DNA of 63,465 nucleotides, counting the filler, from Reticulomyxa filosa (lineage: Eukaryota; Protista; Foraminifera), in assembly GCA_000512085.1 (NCBI GenBank). It is 26 parts of 26 records of this genome, joined end to end, with 100 filler letters (N's around TTAATTAATTAA, not from the genome) between each part and the next. Parts side by side here need not be neighbours in the genome. Positions count along the whole stretch, not along the records: positions 15,579 to 17,380 come from ASPP01017884.1; 25 more parts are not named here. The stretch is one strand, 5' to 3'. Shown in pieces: positions 16,442-16,855 of this stretch. Numbering within the stretch: position 1 is the first letter of the stretch; each line of letters starts with the position of its first letter. A program made the translations under genes and the position numbers. Below the pieces are notes generated by a model. That model ran no database searches and was not told where the DNA came from. It was given only the letters and a program-made list of their open reading frames with translations.

Positions 16442-16855
16442 GCCAAGGTCGCCAAATGGTAGGGTACTACAAATGATGTTGTATGTGTTTGCTTTTTTTA
16501 TTTTTTTCTTTTTTTATTCTTTTTTTTTCCGGGTGCTGAAGGGTTGGTGATTGAAGTGTTGGTAATTGGGGGGTTGTGGTGACATAAGTTAATCATATGG
16601 TGCCACTTCATGTAGTTATTGGGATAAGTGGTAACTTCATGAAACTGTAGATAGCATCTACTACTTCATGCAAGTGTACTTATTCTGATAACTCATGTGA
16701 CTGCACCAAATGATTGTGGGGCATCTCAAGTAACTTAACAAGTGCAACCTCATTAGGTTAGTTACATGTAACTGCACTTGTTACACATCTTGTGACTGCC
16801 CCACGCAAACATATATGATATTAGTGGGATCAGTGTTCGAATCCCTGCTTTGGCA
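16442..16855 (+). ncRNA. tRNA-like RNA gene with a ~350-nt structured insert replacing the anticodon loop (element 2)
   Basis: Acceptor GCCAAGG/CTTTGGC+A, A-box TCGCCAAATGG, stem ACTA/TAGT, T-arm CAGTG-TTCGAAT-CCCTG (B-box GTTCGAATCC), 17-bp insert-closing helix, T4 at 16862. Confidence 0.78.

Follow-up and report, generated by a model that had tools for sequence, protein, structure and literature searches.

A sequence resembling a tRNA gene lies in the genome of the foraminiferan Reticulomyxa filosa (GCA_000512085.1) in two halves, at 16442-16472 and 16815-16855, which are separated by an insert of 342 nucleotides (nt) at 16473-16814. Positions are counted along the window, a stretch of 63,465 nt, filler included, in which 26 parts of the assembly are joined end to end; the DNA analysed here is the 1.8-kb piece at 15579-17380 (ASPP01017884.1), and all results are limited to that piece. 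Its G+C content is 33.6% and its plus strand is rich in T. No open reading frame (ORF) in the piece exceeds 72 amino acids (aa) under the standard code and nothing convincing appeared under ten other codes; four ORF pieces searched against Pfam had no match, and 0/7 ORF products were present in the protein collection. Organelle genes were looked for across the whole 1.8 kb and none was seen. A sliding scan of 120 nt at a time recognised three structured spots only: two hairpins of the insert, H3 (z = -5.5, the top 120-nt segment of the piece) and H2 (z = -4.3), and a double hairpin at 15833-15918 (z = -4.6). Table 1 gives the coordinates of the split gene and its insert.

Table 1. Features of the tRNA-like gene and the sequence that divides it, in order of position along the window.
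Feature	Position	Strand	Details
tRNA-like 5' half	16442-16472	+	acceptor GCCAAGG, U8, 3-bp D stem with loop AAATGGTAG
Left ATGAT direct-repeat copy	16473-16477	+	border repeat, perfect over 5 nt
Closing helix 5' arm / left terminal inverted repeat	16478-16492	+	strong part 16483-16492, ATGTGTTTGC
T-rich tract	16493-16528	+	T7 16493-16499, T7 16501-16507, T7 16509-16515, T9 16520-16528
G+T-rich, almost C-free stretch	16529-16590	+	weak G-U-rich predicted pairing, z near 0
H2	16591-16715	+	125-nt long hairpin, z = -4.3
Module copy M1	16598-16612 with 16694-16708	+	base of H2
H3	16716-16804	+	89-nt Y-shaped hairpin, outer part is module copy M2; 34 pairs, z = -6.5
Module copy M3	16741-16779	+	nested in H3; basal stem AGTGC/GCACT; repeat family D4
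Closing helix 3' arm / right terminal inverted repeat	16805-16819	+	strong part 16805-16814, GCAAACATAT
Right ATGAT direct-repeat copy	16815-16819	+	overlapped by the closing-helix 3' arm
tRNA-like 3' half	16815-16855	+	anticodon loop AUGAUAU (GAU), anticodon-stem 3' strand, 4-nt variable region

Two further features lie at some distance from the insert. The spot at 15833-15918 consists of two neighbouring hairpins with common TGACAC/GTGTCA ends, and lies between the two near-perfect copies of an 8-nt direct repeat (7/8; TGAAGGGC upstream, TGAAGTGC downstream). This double hairpin may be another small palindromic insertion, and with its flanks it hints that insertions of this kind are frequent in this genome; it has no obvious likeness to the module of H2 and H3 described below. 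On the minus strand at 17130-17255, a 42-aa open stretch with TAA and TGA at its bounds shows a borderline resemblance to the motif at the C-terminus of p25-alpha (TPPP) proteins. Here QQNIVDKLTKPD aligned with KQNIFDKLTNPD of protein P0001 (E = 5.6e-4, 1.8 billion proteins searched), and stop codons interrupt the resemblance. The stretch by itself had no match in Pfam, and the contig of the sole protein match (L010, GCA_020049755.1, 24.7% GC) contains neither the module motifs nor a tRNA. The match is borderline, and the stretch is probably what remains of a decayed eukaryotic gene or exon.

A tRNA-like gene in two halves

The two halves were searched separately, and the joined tRNA model was judged only by the intron mode of ARAGORN. 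With introns allowed and a threshold of <=93%, the program called a single tRNA-Ile(GAU) on the plus strand at 16442-16855, with the 342 nt as its intervening sequence. Most elements of a tRNA can be recognised: a 7-bp acceptor stem, U8, a GG-containing D loop, a T loop and a discriminator base are all in place. The 5' half ends with two spacer nucleotides followed by TACAA as the 5' strand of the anticodon stem, and beyond its variable region the 3' half continues with a T arm (loop TTCGAAT), the acceptor 3' strand CTTTGGC and discriminator A. The host has three defects: one nucleotide too many separates the D stem from the anticodon stem, and mismatches interrupt the anticodon stem (A-A) and the T stem (U-C). 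GAU is the isoleucine anticodon of bacteria, archaea and organelles and not the usual one of eukaryotic cytosolic tRNA; apart from this anticodon, no organellar mark is present on the piece. Just 3' of the end of the tRNA-like sequence, a 16-nt direct repeat (ATTTTAYATTTGTTTG) occupies 16861-16876 and 16917-16932, 56 nt apart, and its first copy includes a T4 able to serve as the tRNA gene's own terminator.

It might be asked whether this resemblance to a tRNA is coincidental or partial, the locus being no more than clustered palindromic repeats in an AT-rich intergenic region beside a stray T-arm-like fragment. ARAGORN at its default threshold finds no tRNA on the piece, and at the lowered threshold 11 of 300 shuffled pieces (3.7%) also yield a 'tRNA with intron' (p ~0.04); furthermore, Rfam recognised no tRNA half on the piece, and the 5' half had no tRNA match in phage records. 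These results favour a chance resemblance. However, the borders predicted for the intron fall exactly on the direct repeat and on the base of the closing helix, which was found independently, and the ARAGORN call gains weight from this agreement. It gains weight too because the T arm of the 3' half matches the T arms of annotated phage tRNA genes, with E-values that are weak for so short a match. The T loop (GTTCGAATC), the GG of the D loop, the 7-bp acceptor stem and the discriminator are correctly spaced, and a first-pass annotation of the window reported the same arrangement in another piece. We consider a chance resemblance unlikely.

Reiterated palindromes within the insert

Taken together, halves and insert form a unit of 414 nt that folds far better than expected, with z = -6.8 on the plus strand and -5.8 on the minus strand. 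The plus strand folds 31 kcal/mol better than the minus strand, an advantage that is compositional because shuffled sequences show the same offset. The first-pass annotation had described a helix at 16716-16804 which it believed to be homologous to one in a second giant insert (7956-8030, minus strand). The strings that it quoted for the present insert are found exactly at 16703-16741 and 16776-16804, and the helix, H3, exists as described: it folds as one Y-shaped hairpin (-38.6 kcal/mol, z = -6.5) that none of 200 dinucleotide shuffles equals, and it is thus a real structure rather than a product of chance. Its outer stem comprises 8+2+4+10 pairs (GTGGGGCA/TGCCCCAC, TC/GA, CAAG/CTTG and TAACAAGTGC/GCACTTGTTA); a U-U mismatch and an internal loop (5x5) interrupt this stem, and two mini-hairpins of 5 bp each cap the hairpin, AACCU-CAUU-AGGUU and AGUUA-CAUG-UAACU. 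All 34 pairs are Watson-Crick and there are zero G-U pairs, so that H3 folds equally well on either strand.

The helix is one of three copies of an imperfect-palindrome module, with M3 nested in M2 such that the two arms of M3 fold into the two apical mini-hairpins of H3. The 3' motif of the module, CWTGTRACTGCMC, occurs three times, at 16694, 16765 and 16789, as does the corresponding 5' motif, at 16599, 16717 and 16742, and orientation is identical throughout; a fourth, degenerate 5'-arm-like motif at 16574-16594 starts within the G+T-rich stretch. Alignment of the 3' arms of H2 and H3 beats all shuffles (0/1000), and the two hairpins are paralogues. An asymmetric internal loop, with TGACT or TAACT on its 3' side, is kept in 3/3 copies. 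Between the copies the basal stems show three compensatory double changes, all of which leave them paired (GGTGC/GCACC vs GGGGC/GCCCC vs AGTGC/GCACT, and CATG/CATG vs CAAG/CUUG). Since every pair is Watson-Crick, this maintained pairing cannot tell RNA from DNA. Across all arms together, mismatches of G-U type and A-C type number 9 and 6, with the closing helix alone one-sided at 5 to 0, and the pairing is that of a palindrome in the DNA, favouring neither strand clearly. As three paralogous copies are already present inside one insert, the helix would be unsurprising in a second, and it is plausible that both inserts belong to one family.

Long T homopolymers like those of the T-rich tract of the insert also occur outside it (T10, T18 and T11, at 15579-15620 and 16407-16417), and T-runs are thus a general trait of this DNA and not specific to the insert. 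The complement of the G+T-rich stretch includes CAACCCCCCAA, which recalls ciliate telomerase-template or telomere-like strings, perhaps by coincidence.

Relatives of the module were sought in metagenome, genome and viral collections, using as query the blocks that had been claimed as common to the two inserts (ATTGTGGGG..TCAAGT..ACAAGT). Six metagenome and three genome stretches matched, two of them being the same TM6 contig; about 11 matches would be expected by chance in genome contigs alone, assuming uniform composition, and the matches are thus at or below chance number. None of the stretches had the 3' blocks in order and none lay inside tRNA halves, the motif scan of viral contigs gave zero matches, and a blastn search with the insert returned nothing from phage and plasmid records. 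An ORF-free, 2-kb metagenome contig of 38% G+C (Ga0099809_10165200; L006:1170-1300) has, beyond the query, a 15-mer and a 10-mer in common with H3 (AATGATTGTGGGGCA and CTTGTGACTG) and GGGGCAC/GTGCCCC pairing. It shows no tRNA-like flanks, and may carry a distant relative of the module.

Borders and origin of the insert

The direct repeat at the borders of the insert can be extended beyond its perfect ATGAT to 9 nt, with ATGATGTTG on the left and ATGATATTA on the right identical at 7/9 positions and both differences being transitions. The junction can slide by 5 nt, and the chance of a slide of at least 5 nt is ~0.009 for random pairs of positions in the piece; ATGAT allows every placement between 31/32 and 36/37, and the canonical 37/38 requires that G37 come from the left copy. 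Directly abutting the 9-nt repeat on its inner side are the inverted repeats ATGTGTTTGC and GCAAACATAT, which are short and imperfect, 16483-16492 and 16805-16814 being complementary at 9/10 positions. The closing helix (16478-16492/16805-16819), of which these are the strong part, comprises 15 bp, 4 of them G-U pairs, or 19 bp when it is run into the exons; at the DNA level, 14/20 positions match, with 5 differences of G-U type and 0 of A-C type. This border layout is that of a target-site duplication plus terminal inverted repeats, and so the insert has both of the border features by which MITEs and other class II elements are recognised (the duplication being ATGAT).

Our preferred explanation, which we hold tentatively and with slightly less than even confidence, is that the insert is a non-autonomous palindromic DNA repeat of the MITE, foldback or hairpin-element type, lodged in the anticodon loop of a tRNA-like gene or pseudogene. 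The reiterated, nested palindrome module would make up most of a 342-bp element that is non-coding and non-autonomous, and that would have arrived by insertion at the DNA level with duplication of its target site. Its insertion would have split, and probably inactivated, a degenerate tRNA-like gene, which may already have been a pseudogene beforehand or may have been made one by the event. The nesting and reiteration of the module support a mobile palindromic repeat because both are typical of such repeats. The runs of T7, T7, T7 and T9 between the tRNA halves leave no room for RNA polymerase III (Pol III) read-through, which also favours the repeat, and the defects of the host tRNA (its extra nucleotide and two mismatches) support insertion in a degenerate gene. 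Similarity to any second insert would then reflect common descent of repeat copies and not a conserved RNA core, while the location in tRNA-like sequence could be due either to a target preference, like that of Dada transposons, or to insertions being tolerated in tRNA copies that are redundant or dead. H3-type helices would most likely be a family of DNA repeats rather than functional RNA.

Several observations sit uneasily with an element of the MITE or foldback type. It is present as a single copy within the analysed piece, and the public scans gave no clear relative. A duplication of 5 or 9 bp fits no specific superfamily. The one-sided tally of the closing helix (5 G-U-type vs 0 A-C-type) mildly favours pairing in a sense-strand RNA, and the three compensatory double changes imply that something maintains pairing. 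The site in the anticodon loop adjoins the canonical intron site, which an intron explains without further assumptions. Finally, the hairpins look young and the tRNA halves degenerate, so that the target would already have had to be a pseudogene.

The insert resembles MITEs and foldback elements in being small (342 bp) and non-coding, in its strong internal palindromes, end inverted repeats and border direct repeat, and in its reiterated subterminal motifs and AT-rich filler. It differs in that neither its termini nor its duplication (5 bp if perfect, 9 bp if imperfect) corresponds to a named superfamily, its terminal inverted repeats are only ~10-15 bp long and imperfect, and it occurs in the piece as one copy with no autonomous partner. 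Dada DNA transposons target tRNA and snRNA genes and insert specifically around the anticodon arm of the former; they have internally deleted derivatives, and many disrupted tRNA copies are tolerated (PMC3706591, PMC8869645). The present insert is likewise a putative DNA element, inside a tRNA-like gene, at the hot spot of the anticodon arm or loop. However, Dada elements create duplications of 6-7 bp and possess subterminal but no terminal inverted repeats (PMC3706591), whereas the insert has a 5-bp (or imperfect 9-bp) duplication plus terminal inverted repeats, and Dada target motifs (e.g. GCGAAA, TAGCTC) are unlike ATGAT. The hairpin-forming elements, double-hairpin elements and GC clusters of mitochondria are short palindromic modules that proliferate and combine (PMC2800124). 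They share with the insert the organisation into module families that form double or elaborate hairpins and occasionally land in RNA genes (PMC2800124), but they are organellar and mostly single units of 20-60 nt, whereas the piece offers no organellar evidence; that study describes no insertion in a tRNA anticodon loop. By analogy, the insert may work like Dada and like the mitochondrial hairpin elements, and we assign it to neither family.

Transcription, splicing and elimination as alternatives

Were the insert a real tRNA intron of giant size, or a structured RNA carried in a tRNA scaffold, it would be transcribed as part of the 414-nt unit and then removed; the hairpin modules would be the functional core of an RNA family found in several tRNA genes, possibly with an origin in a transposed element. 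We consider this unlikely, although it has several attractions. The insert lies within the anticodon loop beside the canonical intron position, its structure is very strong (z = -6.8 for the whole unit), and a second instance was reported by the first-pass annotation. The closing helix departs from complementarity through G-U differences and none of A-C type, changes among the module copies are compensatory, and the asymmetric loop kept in all three modules is a candidate protein-binding site. Protein-spliced tRNA introns include transposed examples in the Thermoproteales, where transposition of introns between tRNA genes is known (PMC4090602), and ectopic ones in Cyanidioschyzon (PMC4090602, PMC3728597). 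The insert resembles these as an intervening sequence in an anticodon loop; related introns of this kind can occupy different tRNA genes.

Against this stand the results obtained for transcription and splicing signals. Over 11 placements, the strict hBHBh' geometry of a bulge-helix-bulge, with a 4-bp central helix and flanking helices, was not found in any, and no bulged 3' splice site was predicted. Instead, a fold constrained to the cloverleaf places a 3-nt bulge after the anticodon stem and, beyond it, an uninterrupted 17-bp helix, within which both junctions lie opposite one another. Runs of T on the sense strand are terminators for Pol III. With four runs of T7-T9 at 16493-16528, a nuclear tRNA-type transcript would end ~55 nt from its start, and the insert thus lacks the transcribed unit free of T-runs that is characteristic of protein-spliced tRNA introns. 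The exons give a poor tRNA, GAU is unusual in a eukaryotic cytosolic tRNA-Ile and H3 is without G-U pairs; to our knowledge, moreover, 342 nt is far longer than any known tRNA intron spliced by proteins. Searches of Rfam with the piece and with the element alone (E up to 10) found no family, including group I and group II introns, the sub-threshold matches to snoR118, a CRISPR repeat, MIR7993, LcrF and SNORA33 being attributable to chance. The group I rule of an exon-final U and an intron-final G fits 0/6 equivalent placements. Other identities were rejected on inspection: borders of spliceosomal type, because the GTATGT...TAG join gives no tRNA, a solo-LTR, which would have TG...CA termini plus a matching duplication, and the Helitron, C/D-box and hammerhead readings, each from the sequence itself.

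The conserved functional RNA core that the first-pass annotation proposed finds no support in these data, given that H3 has no G-U pairs, that mismatches stand at 9 to 6, and that neither an Rfam family nor a splice motif was found. Among the roles it suggested, a Pol III-driven transcript reading through the insert is contradicted by the four T-runs between the tRNA halves, and a mobile element in tRNA genes fits best, because of the border direct repeat, the terminal inverted repeats and the nested modules.

Very unlikely, in our estimation, is a family of ~340-nt hairpin-module inserts that occupies the anticodon loops of several tRNA-like genes and is nonetheless expressed, either as unconventional introns or as split tRNA. 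In the first case, the inserts could be transposon-derived giant introns with an unconventional mode of removal; since the two junctions lie opposite one another within a single long helix, a nuclease specific for double strands is suggested rather than the tRNA endonuclease. In the second, the 5' half could end at the T-runs and, by way of the closing helix of 15-19 bp, pair with a 3' half that is produced separately. Were the insert transcribed with its halves and then removed, it would be by far the longest tRNA intron, derived from a repeat and devoid of the usual splice motif. Its removal, if true, would bear on the open question of how eukaryotic tRNA introns are gained (discussed in PMC4090602).

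Two further possibilities, that the insert is eliminated from DNA in the manner of a ciliate internal eliminated sequence (IES), with ATGAT as its 'pointer', or that repetitive hairpin elements have invaded a trnI(GAU) of organelle type at this locus, strike us as highly improbable. Ciliate IES occur in germline DNA but not in somatic DNA, and a pointer repeat marks their ends. The ATGAT border repeat is pointer-like in this sense, and retention of one copy restores a tRNA-like sequence; T-runs would be irrelevant under either variant, GAU is the bacterial and organellar isoleucine anticodon, and the borderline fragment nearby resembles p25-alpha, a family of ciliated eukaryotes. In mitochondria, hairpin-forming repeats are known to invade RNA genes (PMC2800124). 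However, neither an organelle gene nor a convincing ORF in any code was seen within the 1.8 kb, the restored tRNA keeps its three structural defects, and mitochondrial hairpin elements are reported to stay in transcripts (PMC2800124).

Thus, the reading that we tentatively prefer remains that of a mobile palindromic repeat within a tRNA-like gene. If this is correct, the locus would be another case of small transposable elements residing in redundant tRNA gene copies. Such copies should then be masked when a fragmented genome like this one is annotated, since they would represent neither tRNA genes nor new RNA families.
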